A stretch of DNA of 64,000 bases from Dimorphilus gyrociliatus (Eukaryota > Animalia > Annelida), in contig CAJFCJ010000019.1 of assembly GCA_904063045.1 (NCBI GenBank), positions 186,001-250,000 on the forward strand, given 5' to 3'. The notes beneath the pieces were generated by a model. That model ran no database searches. It saw nothing but the letters and a program-made list of their open reading frames with translations, and had not been told where the DNA came from. Shown piece after piece: positions 25,318-33,507 of this stretch (its first letter is position 1; the number at the start of each line of letters is the position of its first letter). The translations under genes were made by a program, and so were the position numbers.

Positions 25318-28300
25318 ATGACCGAAAATCAGGGAATGCAACATCTAATCCCAGTTGTCAACAAACTGCAAGATGCCTTTGCTTCATTAGGTGTTCCGTT
25401 ATCTCTTGATTTACCACAAATAGCTGTCGTTGGCAGTCAAAGCGCTGGAAAGAGTTCAGTTTTGGAAAATTTTGTGGGCAAGTAAGTAAATAACGCTGTC
25501 TAGTGACATTTGAAAAAATATCAACTCTCATTGTCTCATTTTATGGAGATGAACGATAATTTAAATGATATCGAATTTTCGGTGTAATGTCAGGCCACTC
25601 CATAATGATATTGATTCGTTCTCAAAGCGTATTATTCGCGGAATAGATAAGAACTAACTTGGTGGGGTGATTCTTGTTTTTACCAGGTCAACTATTTGTT
25701 GACAATTTCCTCGATTACTGGAAGAGAACACCCAGTAATTAAGTTTTAGGGGGCGGTTTTTTTCTTTCGCGCCAAGTTCTGATCTATATAATTTTCATTT
25801 CATTTTCAACAGGGACTTTTTGCCTCGTGGTAGTGGAATCGTAACTCGGAGACCTTTAATCCTGCAGCTCATCAATAGTAATACTGGTAAGTTGAATGTT
25901 TATAATAAATAGTCATATGCTATGTTTTTGAAGACATGTTTATAAATTTTATTAGTACAATTATGTAATTAGGTCTATTATATACTAACAACAGCACTTG
26001 TTATTCATATAGTTTCATTTTCTTATTAATTTGTACCAGGTAGTTAATTTACCAATTTGGTAGCTAAGAACGTAACTAGTAGCGCTCAGGGTTGCTTTAT
26101 CGATTATTACTAGCATTGAGAAGTACATATAAGGGCTTCAATCTATAACATATATGTTTCAACTTCTCGGATTTGCTATTGGTAAAATGATATTTCTCTT
26201 TTTTCCTTACAGAATATGCTGAATTTTTACACTGTAAAGGACGCATTTTCTCGGACTTTGATCAGGTTCGAGCTGAAATCGAAGCTGAAACAGATCGCAT
26301 TACAGGAACAAATAAGGGGATTTCAAATGTTCCAATTAACCTTCGTGTATATTCACCACACGTTCTTAATCTTACACTCATCGATCTTCCGGGTCTTACG
26401 AAAGTACCTGTAGGTGATCAACCTCACGACATTGAACAGCAAATTAGGAATATGCTTTTGGAATTTATTAATCGGGAAAGTTGCTTAATTTTGGCTGTTT
26501 CTCCAGCGAATACTGATCTTGCAAATTCAGATGCGCTGAAAATTGCCAAAGAAGTAGACCCTCAAGGTGTTCGGACAATCGGAGTTGTGACAAAATTGGA
26601 TTTGATGGATGAAGGAACTGACGCAAGAGATATTCTGGAAAACAAAACACTACCGTTACGAAGGGGTTATATTGGAGTTGTCAATAGATCTCAAAAGGAT
26701 ATTGACGGACGTAAAGACATAAAGGCAGCTCTATCTTCTGAGCGAAAATTCTTCTTGTCTCATCCAGCTTATAGACATATTGCTGATAAATTAGGAACAC
26801 CTTATTTACAGAAAACTCTCAATCAACAATTGACTAACCATATTCGGGACACACTACCTGGTCTTCGAAGCAAGTTACAAGCTCAATTTCTATCGATGGA
26901 AAGAGACGTGGAAGAATACAAGAACTTTAGTCCCAATGATCCGACTATAAAAACTAAGGCCATGATGCAAATGACTACAGAATTTGGTGGTGATTTCGAG
27001 AAGTCAATTGAAGGAACAGGATCCGAAATTTCAACGAATGAACTTTCCGGTGGAGCAAAGATCAATCGGATATTTCATGAGAGATTTCCTTTTGAACTGG
27101 TAAAAATGGAGTGTGACGAGAAAGAATTGCGCCGTGAAATTACTTATGCTATTAAAAACATCCATGGTATACGTACGGGTTTATTTACACCAGATATGGC
27201 ATTCGAAACCATCGTTAAGAGACAAATCGAAAAACTAAAGGAGCCATCCTTAAAATGCGTTGACATGGTAGTTTCTGAGCTAAGTAACGTCATTCAGAGG
27301 TGTACTGACAAAATGAATCGTTATCCTGTACTCCGCGAAGAGACAGAAAGAATAGTAACCATGAAGGTCCGAGAATGCGAGATGAATACCAAGAATCAGT
27401 TAATCCTTATGGTCAACATTCAATTATCTTATATGAATACCAATCATGAAGATTTTATTGGATTTGCCAAGTAAACTATTTTATAATATATTTGTTTTTG
27501 ATCTAACTAACTGAATATACTTTACAACAGCGCTCAACAAAAGTCGGAAACGTCTTCAAAACGTAAACTTGGAAATCAAGTCATCCGAAAAGGTTGGCTC
27601 TCTCTCCATAATGTTTCCTTCATAAAGGGAGGCTCGAAAGAATTTTGGTTTGTTCTTTCTGCCGAAACTTTGGCATGGTATAAGGATGAAGAAGAGAAAG
27701 AGAAGAAATATATGTTACCATTAGACAACTTAAAAGTATATAAACTTTCGCTAGAAATTAGATTTGTAGCTTTTTTTTATTATTAATCTTTTATAATTTC
27801 AGGTCAGAGACATTGAATCGGGCTTTATGTCTCGTTCTCATAAATTTGCTTTGTTTTCCACCGACACCCGTAACGTCTATAAAGACTATAAGCAGTTAGA
27901 ATTAGGAGCAGAGTCCCAGGATGACGTTGATAGCTGGAAAGCGTCTTTCCTAAGAGCTGGAGTATATCCTGAACGGAATACGGATGTAGAGAGAGAATCT
28001 GTAAGTTAAGATTTTGTTTTACGCATCCTTCTGGAGTTCATAATCTTGCTATTAATACTTTATTTTACAATTTCTTTATTTTTTACAGAGTAATTATGTA
28101 CGTTTTATTTGAATATTTACATCTGTTTTAAGTAGTATCTAACTCTGCACAGAGATTTATACATATATAGATATGTATATATATATATATATATATATAA
28201 AACATATATAATTAGTTATTAAAAAAAAAATTAGAGGCAGCCTATATATTATTTTTTTAAACAATTAATAACGATATTCTTTGTTTAATTAATTCAAAAA

Positions 28301-30993
28301 AAAAAGATTATTTATTTTTTACTCACAATCTTTTTTCTTCCACATGAAATCTATCAATATAAAAAAAATTTACCGTTTTAAAGCTAGTAAGTTTCGTACT
28401 GATGGCTATATCACAATTATTATTTTATTCTTTTTTTTTTGCTGAGTGATTTTCTCATTGTCAGAGTGAATTAAAAACAAAAACAATATCAACATTTTAT
28501 AAAATATAAATCTTTCGAAAAATTTCTTTTTTTTTTTTTTTCCCCCAAATAATCCAAAAAAAAGATTAATTTAATGGAATGTTCTTTAGTTTTTATTTAT
28601 TTATTTATTTACCTATTACTAAATTTTGTCAGTGTAGCTCACAATAAACATTATCATTTACCCTGCTCTCTCTGTCAAGAAAAAAAAAAAGAAAAAGAAA
28701 GAAATATTTTTATATTTAATGATAATAATAATAATAATATCAATGGCAACAACAAAACAGAATAGCTTCCGCTATTTCAGCTTTCATATATTTTAATGTA
28801 TAATTATTAAAAACAAAAAAAAAACAATACTTAAAAAAAAAACAATGATTAATTAATTGTTCCAAGCAGGCAATTAAAGTCAGCTTATGTGGCTTACATG
28901 TTTTGGAAACTAAAAAGTAGTTAAAATATTCAATTTTGACTATTAAAAAAATATCTATTATTTCTATTTTCATTTATTTTTATTTTGTTAAACAATTTTT
29001 TTTTTAAATAATAAATTAACAGCGAGGTGAAGAATTAGGATCAACCGATCCTCAACTAGAAAGACAAGTTGAAACTATTAGAAATCTTGTGGACAGTTAT
29101 TTAAAAATTATTCATAAAACTGTTCGAGATTTGGTCCCAAAGACTGTGATGTACATGATAATAATGGCAGTAAGTGTAATAATTTTTATTTCCTCGTCGA
29201 CAGGGTTCGCGTGACTCAGAAATGGGTTCCATCGACCCACAATTAGAAAGACAGGTGGAAACAATCAGGAATCTCGTCGACTCTTACATGCAAATAGTGA
29301 ATAAGACCCAACGGGATCTTGTTCCCAAAGCCGTTATGCATATGATAATTAATGAAGTGAGACTTTCGATCTAAGACATTTAGTTCACTTTTTTTACGTT
29401 AGAAAAATTTTTATTAAGCTTATCTGGCTCTTGGTTTAAATGTCGTATTCTTTTACTATATTTTACTCCTAGCTTTCCTTACGCATGAAATATATTTACA
29501 CTAGCAATGTAAACTTTTGGGATTTGCACTACTTTTTACTATGGTTGGGATTTCCAGGAAAAAAATATAATTTAGGCTTAGTCTAACTTTTTGTTAGTTT
29601 CAACCTGTAGTGGTTATGCTCCCTGTCGACTTGTTAACTTTGTTAATGTTTCATCACTGTATTTTTTTTCCAAAGACAAAAAGCAATTTTATACTTTTCT
29701 TTTACAGTTAAAGGCATTTATTTCAAAGGAACTATTAGCCCACCTTTATTCATCAGGAGATCAGGTAAAAATGAGATAAGCAACTTGAATGTTTTTTAAC
29801 ATATTAGCAATCTACGTCTTAGAATAATCTGATGGAGGAAAGTCCAGAAGAAGCTCAAAAACGAGAGGATACTCTTCGAATGTATCAGGCAACTAAGGTG
29901 ATTTATCTGAAAACTTTTATAAAAAATATATTCAGACTAACTAATAATTAATTACACTCGTAATAGGAAGCGTTAAAAATCATTTCGGAAGTCTCGACAC
30001 AAACAGTATCGACTCCATTGCCACCACCGGTAAATGACGAATGGCTGGCAAATAGCGGATCAAATTCTTCGTAAGTACAGAATAGACAAAAAAAAGAAAG
30101 AGTTAGATAAGATTTTCTATGCATCGAAAACTAGTAAATCGTAGACTTGATATTGTAGTTCTTTAAACGTTCTTTTTTTATGGTTTTTTTTGTCTCTGTT
30201 TACTACTTTATTTCGTATATCGATGAATTATTTTGCACGAGCACGTATATTGCATGCAGACCTCATTATCACCATAACCATGAAATTTCGAACGGTCCTG
30301 GATCGTGGTCACATATGCATAGTAAGCCTGCAGTTCCAGCAAATAAACCTCCACACGGGTAAGTTCGTTGTGACTTTGAAACACTAGATGATTGATAGGT
30401 AGAATTCTGCTTGTCTGAACTCCGTTGATTTTAGTGACTAAAACTTGGAATGACGAATGATATTTTCTAACAATTTTTTCGTCTTTTTTTTTTTATTGCA
30501 ACCGATTTTACAGGCAAGCTAAGTATGTATTTCTGTCATCTAGACTCTGTAGTTTTTAGTTTGATTGAAGTTATTCTTTCCATTATCTTTCTTTTCCTTG
30601 AAAATCTTTGTTGGAGAAATTTTCCTTCTATTTACACTTCAATTTGTCATGTGGAAACATTTTGTTTTTTTTTGTTAGAATGAACAGTCGTGGACCGCCG
30701 TCAGCTTCTACCATGCGAAGTGCACCTGCACCCCCTTCAGCGAGACCCGCTGTAGGGGCACCTTCAAGACCAGCGCCATCACGACCAGCTCCAAGTCCAA
30801 CCCCAGTTCAGCAAGGAGGTGGTCTACCACCTCCTCTAATACCTCAGTAATACAAATTATACTTTGTACTTGAAATAATTTTATACTTTTAACACTTTTT
30901 CTCTTGTTTATTTCTTATAGACGTCCTGTTCCTGGAGGAGCGGCGCCGCCACCAGTGCCAGGCCGACCGAGTATGCCATCTAGACCGCAGTAA
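25318..30993 (+). CDS. DNM: Classical dynamin (GTPase, middle, PH, GED, PRD). Exons 25318-25481, 25813-25886, 26213-27470, 27531-27735, 27803-28000, [28089-28097], 29023-29169 or 29204-29356, 29708-29764, 29823-29897, 29967-30070, [30260-30358], [30514-30522], 30679-30846, 30921-30993
   Basis: [56 protein letters not shown] domain [33 protein letters not shown], Pro-rich tail. All splice phases were checked and are consistent. Confidence 0.96.
28164..28210. repeat. (TA)n microsatellite within an AT-rich low-complexity dynamin intron
   Basis: atatatatatatatatatat run; flanking poly-A/poly-T tracts through about 29000. Confidence 0.75.
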
Positions 30994-33507
30994 ACGAACA
31001 GAGAAGAGAGAGAAATTGTACATTGTTACTAGTCAACACACGCTTAAAAAGTTGCTTCTCTCTTTAGATGATACTACATAGGCAGTGCGATAATTATTAC
31101 ATATTTTGCGAACTTTTAATCGATTTAGCATAGCAATAAAATATATGTTTAGTGACGTGTATTGAATCAATCATTGCTGTTGATGCATTGATCAATTACA
31201 TTCCAGATATATAGTTTACAGTGACACTGTAGATCAGTGGTCGTTTCTATCCTGTGCACGAAAGGAACATTAAGTGTCATTCGTTAAGTCGACGTACATT
31301 TTGATTAAAATATTTGTCTTAAGCTATACATACCAACTGATCAAATAAAGTATTTATGATTAGTCAGATTACTCACATCGTAATGTCTCCTAACAGTATG
31401 TGCATAAATCAAATAAAAGAATCTTGCAATGTACGATTATTTCTCGAAATTCACTGTTCAAAAACTCTTAACATTTGACACTAACTCTTGTCCAAATTTT
31501 CCAACAGATTCATGGTATAAAAAGTGATAAATTCGTTCATAACTTTCATTCAAAAACTGAAACAGTCAAAATTATAGTTGAACTTTTTCAGCCATATTTA
31601 AAAATGTATTATTGAAATTTCTACCAATAAAAAATATTTTTGCCAAATGAAATAATTTCTTTATTTTACCAGTTTATCGTCATATTTTCCACAAATATAT
31701 ACACCACACATACACGGCAAACACTGAATAAGAGTACGAATTATCCGATATCATACTTTTGAGGTTTTATCACGAATGTTTATATAAAAAACGGATATAT
31801 TTCACGTTGTAGAGATATTAATATTCACTTAATGAATTAATGAGTAAGAGAAAACTTTTTCGTAATTAGTCTCATTACAGTAAAGAAATTAAAAGCCCGT
31901 TGAAAGGAAACTGCTACTATTTCTCGTTAAAGAATATTGTAGGAAAACAACAATGGATTATCAATAGAGATTATTAGCATAGGAGTAAATGTAACAACAA
32001 AAACAATAACCTAAATTATATAAGCTCTGACAAACATTGATGGAAAACAGTGTACACTATATCCGAATACTACAGTTTTTTTTTCTGCACATATTTAATA
32101 GTTTTAAAAAATGACCATAACAAAATGACAAAATTAACATCTTTTGTTACCATCAAAGGATGTAAAAATCGATAATAATATGGAGAAAAATGTTAAATTA
32201 GAAGCATTGCTTAATGGAATCCTTTCTGTGTTCTTTTCTAATTTTACTTTAAACTACAAAGCGAATTTGATTAAAATAATATTGTCTATTTAGAGCTATA
32301 AATAAATAGATAATCCTTTTTAAAAAATAACGCTAATAAAGTCTTTTACAGTAGCAAAGGTGAATAGTACATTTTATAGAATAAAGAATAAAGTAATAAT
32401 GTGATAAATATTTTCACATGTAAATAAATTGCGATTATTTATTAATAGTAATAATGATATATTTATATCTATGTTTAAAGATTACATAAAAAAGGAAGTT
32501 TCTCAAGGTGATCTTAACCCAAAAATAAATAGAACGTAGTGATAAAAGGGAAAATTTCATGAGTTAAAAAATTATTTTTATTGTGTTTTTTTCTTTTCTT
32601 CTCTTACTTTTTACTTTTTTTTGTTTTGTTCTTTAACTCTGTTGGACATTTTTATTTCATAAGAAAGTTAAAGGTTAACATTTCAATTTTCAATGTAACG
32701 ACTGTTTAAATTTTACACTTGACAAGGATAATAAATAATTACATTCAGCTGCAAGTTAGTGTATATACATTTTTCACTTATTGTTTATTTTAACTAGTAT
32801 GGTTACGGGATCTCAATCATGTCTACAAAGTAAAGGATCTAATGATCAAAAGAGACTGTTTAGAACATTTACTCATTTGTAATGTCGTTCAAACATGTTG
32901 TTATTGCAGAACTTGTACGTACACGTACGCTATTATACTTGTTTATATTTTTGAAGTACCTTTCGCCCTTCCGATATTTAAACAACACTTTGTATAGTCA
33001 TTTATTTTCTGACTTTATGACAAAATATTTCACACTTTCTAGGTTTTCTCTTTATTATGAGTATAGAAATAACGCTAATCGGTTTATAATCCCCAAGCTA
33101 TGCTTATGTAAGCTGGTCATATGTCGGCCTATATGTAGAGTAGCGTATATTTTTCTGAATTATGAAAGTTTCTTTTTATTTTTTCGGTAGCTTATTATCT
33201 TTTAGACTTTAAATATCATCATTAAGCTGTAATCTAATACTTCTGCAAGGGCTGAGAAAACAACGTTTTTAATACGCAAAGGCCTACCATGGCGGCCTTG
33301 CGTAGTAATACATTAGAATTCCAACCCGCCGCAAGCGCCACTACTATCGGCGAACTAGTTCCAGGTGCAGTGTTGTATAACTCGCTTATAGAATAACAAC
33401 CATCTCATATAATTTTAAATTACAATTTAAAATTTTATTTTTAAATATGTAATTTCACTTTTGCCAGATAATATTCATCGAAATCGTATAATTTAGACAA
33501 AAGCTAA

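Follow-up and report, generated by a model that had tools for sequence, protein, structure and literature searches.

A conserved intronic element complementary to one of two mutually exclusive dynamin exons in the annelid Dimorphilus gyrociliatus

Results

Two mutually exclusive exons in a dynamin gene

The DNA analysed here, called the window throughout, is a stretch of 64,000 nucleotides from Dimorphilus gyrociliatus (assembly GCA_904063045.1, contig CAJFCJ010000019.1, positions 186,001 to 250,000). It is AT-rich animal DNA and carries, on its plus strand, a dynamin gene that extends from about 25310 to past 31100. A constitutive exon coding for the end of the PH domain (27803-28000; this and all features below are on the plus strand) is followed by two homologous exons, exon A (29023-29169, 147 nt) and exon B (29204-29356, 153 nt). 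According to their translations, both code for a segment of the dynamin GED, exon A in a divergent copy and exon B in a canonical-looking one. The next constitutive exon downstream, exon C, occupies 29708-29764.

RNA contigs of four public runs from four studies (one from the same organism, two from marine or coral metatranscriptomes and one from a relative) were mapped on region 27480-31100. [quoted passage not shown] The joint from exon A to exon C (29169>29708) was present in three of the four. Neither a joint between exons A and B (29169>29204) nor a joint skipping both (28000>29708) occurs in the contigs of the four runs, which can miss rare forms. From this pattern it follows that A and B are true mutually exclusive exons, both commonly used, though contigs yield no ratios of their use.

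Two further variants of the gene were noticed in the same material. Alongside the GT donor of exon A, runs X3 and X5 contain a second donor 3 nt upstream (window 29166-29170; joint 29165/6>29707/8), which reads as a GC..AG intron and drops the last Ala codon of the exon. A cassette exon is located at 30260-30358, between the GED and the proline-rich tail; its inclusion (30070>30260 and 30357/8>30678/9) and its skipping (30070>30679) are both found in a same-species run.

The intron between exons A and B

Exons A and B are separated by an intron of 34 nt (29170-29203). It contains the GTAAGT donor of exon A and the branch-point-like TGTAAT/TAAT, the pyrimidine tract and the AG of exon B. The distance from the donor to the branch-point-like A is 9-12 nt, and the adenosines of this motif are the sole branch-point-like ones upstream of exon B. 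Thirty of the 34 positions are identical in a relative, represented by a Logan contig that spans the region (SRR23372228, here L002). Introns elsewhere in the dynamin gene measure 58-74 nt; in D. gyrociliatus, introns have a median length of 66 bp and splicing favours short ones (PMC7854359). Comparable pairs, likewise built of exons with lengths divisible by three, are known from C. elegans, namely let-2 exons 9/10 with a 30-nt intron and egl-15 exons 5B/5A with a 14-nt intron (PMC4165533).

By analogy with these cases, the 34-nt intron points to steric hindrance as the simplest cause of exclusivity. Because the donor and the putative branch point are only 9-12 nt apart in an intron of this length, U1 and U2 would be unable to sit on it together. 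The donor of exon A and the branch point and pyrimidine tract of exon B would then not be occupied at the same time, and the intron would be unspliceable. Reading frame or NMD cannot enforce exclusivity, since the lengths of both exons are multiples of three. A preceding reading of this DNA, made from the sequence only, had put forward a candidate RNA switch; the steric cause that the 34-nt intron offers was left unused there, although it is the simplest one.

An intronic block complementary to exon B

The 351-nt intron downstream of exon B contains a block, termed D (29594-29636, with a 36-nt core at 29595-29630), which is separated from exon B by 240 nt and from exon C, further downstream, by 77 nt. 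As many as 31 of the 36 core bases pair with the 3´ splice site of exon B and its first 60 nt. Parts of this complementarity had been pointed out by the sequence-only reading. The segment TAGTTTCAACCTGT lies at 29595-29608 as described, and its reverse complement agrees with exon A at 29064-29077 in 13 of 14 positions and with exon B at 29251-29264 in 12 of 14. The segment CCCTGTCGAC at 29621-29630 is indeed a perfect 10-bp complement of GTCGACAGGG, but the latter is found at 29196-29205, not at 29197-29206; it covers the AG (29202-29203) of the exon B 3´ splice site. The two helices with exon B nest in antiparallel order, also as claimed. The 12 nt between the two segments of D, regarded at first as a spacer, pair with exon B as well (8 bp, 29209-29216 with 29612-29619), and the complementarity thus exceeds what had been proposed.

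Ungapped helix scores were compared with those of 2000 dinucleotide shuffles of the intron. The best single helix, which is the one with exon A, reached P=0.06, and the score of the 10-bp helix was matched in about 40% of shuffles. Neither helix is significant taken alone. Measured against shuffled sequence, the single helices on which the initial proposal was built stay within chance, whereas the whole 36-nt block paired with exon B lies beyond it. RNAduplex of D with exon B gave -38.4 kcal/mol, as against -20.8±3.0 for shuffles (z -5.9, 0/1000). The corresponding duplex of the relative amounts to -38.3 kcal/mol (z -5.5, 0/1000 shuffles). The real locus was not matched by any of 198 control loci that were taken from the window with the same geometry (best -35.5 vs -39.5). 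Among 41 tested combinations of conserved intronic blocks and targets, D versus exon B alone stands out in both species, and when the intron was scanned, D came out about 24 kcal/mol under the median window. A global RNAduplex of the 334 and 351 nt gave a meaningless duplex; helix scoring and block-wise duplexes were used instead.

D is single-copy in the genome (349 contigs, 77.9 Mb). Rfam and tRNA searches of 27900-29900 gave no match, and D is therefore neither a tRNA-derived repeat nor an RNA gene already known. The palindrome GTCGAC is present three times within 430 nt, at the acceptor of exon B (29196), inside exon B (29276) and in D (29625); each copy is directly preceded by C or T, and alternative 6-bp pairings are allowed.

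Conservation in a related lineage

All comparisons of conservation described here involve two lineages only, that of the window and that of L002. Two other contigs, L008 and L009, are identical to L002, and a further lineage, L001 (ERR14224706), ends before the region. A protein search with the exon B ORF gave distant animals only, and neither a search with the PRD-exon ORF nor pattern scans of metagenomes found further lineages.

The two lineages are considerably diverged: third codon positions of constitutive exons differ in 32-44% of cases, and, apart from a single island, identity in the intron following exon B is 54%. This island is D, in which 36 of 38 positions (29594-29631) are identical. 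The probability of such a block arising anywhere in the intron is about 1e-5, and no other block of the intron has at least 18/20 identity. Two substitutions separate the cores of D. Through the one at 29605 (C>T), a G-C pair with exon B becomes G.U, and the one at 29602 (A>G) affects a base that forms a mismatch with exon B in either species.

Exon B is constrained as well. In the part that pairs with D (29204-29264), one of 20 third positions differs and this one belongs to the unpaired bulge. Third positions changed in 10 of 31 cases in the rest of exon B and in 31 of 78 in three constitutive exons. Synonymous change is thus suppressed in the paired part (Fisher p 0.03 against the rest of exon B and 0.003 against the constitutive exons). 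The segment 29265-29295 is also 100% identical in the relative, synonymous sites included, about 30 nt beyond the paired part. Because synonymous conservation extends to 29295, the constraint on exon B is not due to D alone, and a further constraint, such as an ESE or some other pairing, acts on 29265-29295. Covariation was sought in the relative, and no pair had changed on both sides in these two lineages; because the arms in exon B are invariant, covariation cannot separate pairing from coding or ESE constraint.

Five islands of at least 18/20 identity with L002 are scattered in the diverged 1-kb intron upstream of exon A (U1-U5: 28075-28120, 28329-28358, 28366-28408, 28431-28456 and 28842-28896). 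One of them contains an acceptor-like TTTTTTACAG and one GTAAGT. No significant pairing of U1-U5 with the exons or with D was detected. In this genome, 29631-29640 can also pair with the donor region of exon A, but L002 lacks this pairing, and it was set aside.

Predicted fold

The predicted duplex of D and exon B is composed of four helices. H2 (29196-29205 with 29621-29630) has 10 bp and lies over the AG of the 3´ splice site. H2b (29209-29216 with 29612-29619) has 8 bp, three of them G.U. H1a (29251-29256 with 29603-29608) and H1b (29258-29262 with 29597-29601) have 6 and 5 bp, respectively. H2 contributes -18.3 kcal/mol and, together with H2b, -28.5 kcal/mol. The helices are part of both MFE and centroid folds of 0.7 kb in both species, and a local hairpin of exon B is accommodated in the bulge of the duplex. 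Base-pair probability of H2 and H2b is 0.94-1.0 in both species, also in contexts of 1.6-1.8 kb, so that the AG at 29202-29203 is predicted to be enclosed in a stable helix with a probability of at least 0.94. H1 (29251-29262 with 29597-29608) is less certain in this genome, with a probability of 0.40 as compared to 0.97 in L002. The core of the original proposal is thus borne out at the level of prediction: a conserved intronic element pairs with the 3´ splice site and the interior of exon B, within a real mutually exclusive pair.

Discussion

A proposed two-layer model of exon choice

In view of its conservation and complementarity, D probably helps to decide which of the two exons is used. 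We suggest a model with two layers, to which we would give about an even chance of being correct. In the first layer, steric hindrance in the 34-nt intron would make exons A and B exclusive. In the second layer, the duplex of D and exon B would mask exon B and favour exon A.

The choice could proceed as follows. Over a long range, D would pair, with interruptions, to the final 8 nt of the A-B intron and the initial 60 nt of exon B. In the resulting duplex the AG of exon B would be buried and the remainder of the exon placed in a loop. At the same time, the donor of exon A, 26 nt before H2, would be brought near the acceptor of exon C, 77 nt after H2, and the path between them would shrink from 538 nt to about 100 nt. 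With the AG buried, exon B looped out and the path from A to C shortened, the duplex would favour exon A. At predicted equilibrium, the duplex is nearly always formed, whereas exon B is apparently used about as often as exon A. The model for this reason needs kinetics or trans factors. Exon B might be chosen if commitment to its 3´ splice site precedes transcription of D, which lies about 400 nt further on, or, alternatively, when D is engaged elsewhere.

Exon A as a possible competing partner of D

A bistable switch would be another way to use the same element. The 5´ half of D would have two alternative partners, 29064-29077 in exon A and 29251-29264 in exon B, each pairing hiding its own exon; pairing with exon A would free the 3´ splice site of exon B and pairing with exon B would do the opposite. 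The behaviour of the relative speaks for this possibility. There, the two substitutions in D extend the match with exon A from the 13/14 found here to 14/14 (one G.U), and the helix strengthens from -13.0 to -16.9 kcal/mol. Three positions of the 14-mer differ between exons A and B; D complements exon A at two of them here, and in L002 each of the three is able to pair with that exon, one through a G.U wobble. When the acceptor of exon B is forced single-stranded in L002, D shifts to exon A with a probability of 0.99, and the z-score of D with exon A is -3.2.

The same manipulation has a different outcome in this genome. The probability of the exon A helix is about 0 even with the acceptor of exon B forced single-stranded, its z-score is -0.85, and D, once its site in exon B is blocked, folds onto a local partner at about 29526-29552. 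Furthermore, cross-complementarity of D to exon A is partly expected because exons A and B are paralogues, and the exon A helix crosses H2 as a pseudoknot, hence the two are not simple alternatives. The claim that exon A competes for D is accordingly not upheld for this genome and is conceivable for L002; such competition is possible but unproven, and weak here. As an explanation of exon choice, we consider the bistable switch rather unlikely.

A conserved 15-nt block of the same intron (29519-29533), which contributes to this local partner, may act as a local competitor for D, as its CACUAC can pair with GUAGUG of D. The fold of this block and D, calculated as a consensus of the two species, reaches -9.6 kcal/mol with no covariation, which is weak evidence. 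One could also imagine D as the hub of a three-way switch, bound to the 3´ splice site of exon B (A chosen), to the interior of exon A (B chosen) or to 29519-29533 (D off). This extension seems doubtful to us. If true, it would place mutually exclusive splicing by competing structures outside arthropods and vertebrates, with selectors in coding sequence over a steric block, and a protein code and an RNA code would share the same bases.

Possible other roles of D

The two-layer model assumes that the duplex represses exon B. The structural evidence would equally fit an activating role, in which the duplex brings exon B near exon C or hides a silencer in its 5´ part. Docking-selector pairings do activate the adjacent exon in Dscam-type clusters (PMC6071210). 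In our case, however, the helix covers the AG of exon B itself and leaves the donor of exon B in the loop, and known arrangements of this kind repress; activation is improbable.

D might also be a conserved intronic enhancer or silencer that binds a protein, its complementarity to exon B being incidental. Its conservation as one unbroken block, bases unpaired in the model included, would suit this idea, and so would the lack of covariation. On the other hand, 31 of 36 bases are complementary, with z about -6 in both species and beyond all genomic controls, and synonymous change is suppressed in the paired part of exon B. We find this reading distinctly improbable.

Further, the exon-intron duplex might be a substrate of ADAR, with D as an editing-site complementary sequence directing A-to-I change in exon B or A. 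An element in the downstream intron that pairs with a strongly conserved exon stretch is typical geometry for it, and A29067 of exon A is opposed by an A.C mismatch. Yet no A>G difference was seen in the duplex region in same-species RNA contigs, from which low-level editing could escape (X5 has no difference and X1 only T>C at 27594), and a change of A29067 by editing would leave the amino acid unaltered (CAA to CAG). Editing is thus very unlikely to be the purpose of D. Least of all do we believe in chance complementarity without function: although the single helices are within chance, the whole block was reached by 0/1000 shuffles and 0/198 control loci and is conserved at P about 1e-5.

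Relation to known systems

Mutually exclusive exons controlled by docking sites and selectors include Dscam1 exon 6, 14-3-3zeta, Mhc and srp, and a model of their origin has been presented (PMC6071210). Several features of our locus are reminiscent of them. As in 14-3-3zeta and Mhc, one conserved element resides in the flanking intron downstream of the cluster. The element shows complementarity to sequence located at the variable exons, and an exon that is looped out is expected to be skipped. There are also important differences. The partners of docking sites are in introns, whereas here they are inside an exon and over its 3´ splice site. Our predicted duplex, with interruptions between its 10+8+6+5 bp, has a strong preference for one exon; of the two selectors, that in exon A is weak in this genome, and exclusivity has a simpler, steric cause. 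The likeness to docking-selector systems noted in the sequence-only reading holds for the exclusive homologous exons and the single conserved element in the downstream intron; as to a selector in exon A, the two lineages differ, its pairing being weak here and stronger in L002.

RNA structure with multiple elements operates also at exons 7a/7b of ATE1 (PMC7797038), and structures have been proposed for exons 10a/10b of mammalian DNM1 (Suyama 2013, as cited in PMC3923563). The latter gene belongs to the same family, dynamin, but its exon pair lies in a different domain. Steric hindrance is the cause of exclusivity in alpha-tropomyosin exons 2/3 as well (PMC4165533). Steric pairs resemble ours in an intervening intron far under the usual size, in exons of lengths divisible by three and in the absence of RNA with both exons included. 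The worm cases have been described with protein regulators, while here a conserved long-range RNA duplex would come on top.

In exon 6B of chicken beta-tropomyosin, RNA structure masks a splice site in a mutually exclusive pair. Here too, a stem made of an exon and its flank is expected to repress one of the exclusive exons. At our locus, in contrast, the arm belongs to the next intron, some 400 nt further downstream, and would bridge the donor of exon A to exon C.

Our literature search found no paper on mutually exclusive exons in the dynamin GED. Tandem GED exons with a divergent first and a canonical second copy are nevertheless present in sequences from organisms unrelated to that of the window: in L004:2298-2635 (ENA ERZ25070786) the copies are 64 nt apart, and in L005:1097-2635 (ERZ26052287) they are separated by about 1.25 kb. 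Only one GED copy is present in L006 and in L007. No element like D was found beside the tandem or single GED exons of the unrelated L004-L006 (z -1.4 to -2.8).

Significance

To our knowledge, long-range RNA pairing that chooses between exclusive exons is well documented in insects and in a handful of vertebrate genes, and hardly in spiralians. The case described here adds a solid example to a type of RNA splicing switch already known and introduces no new principle. Its value lies, firstly, in the system itself, which is small (0.7 kb), statistically clean and conserved, and is found in an annelid with a compact genome and with splicing adapted to short introns. Secondly, it lies in the combination of a steric block with a predicted duplex that would mask a 3´ splice site and cut a long intron to the usual size of the species. 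Being small, clean and conserved, with combined steric and duplex layers, the locus makes an easily testable minigene system. The segment of dynamin concerned, the GED, is alternatively encoded in some invertebrates. The pair of exons in D. gyrociliatus could show how splicing by intron definition copes with an alternative exon, and how RNA structure constrains coding sequence.
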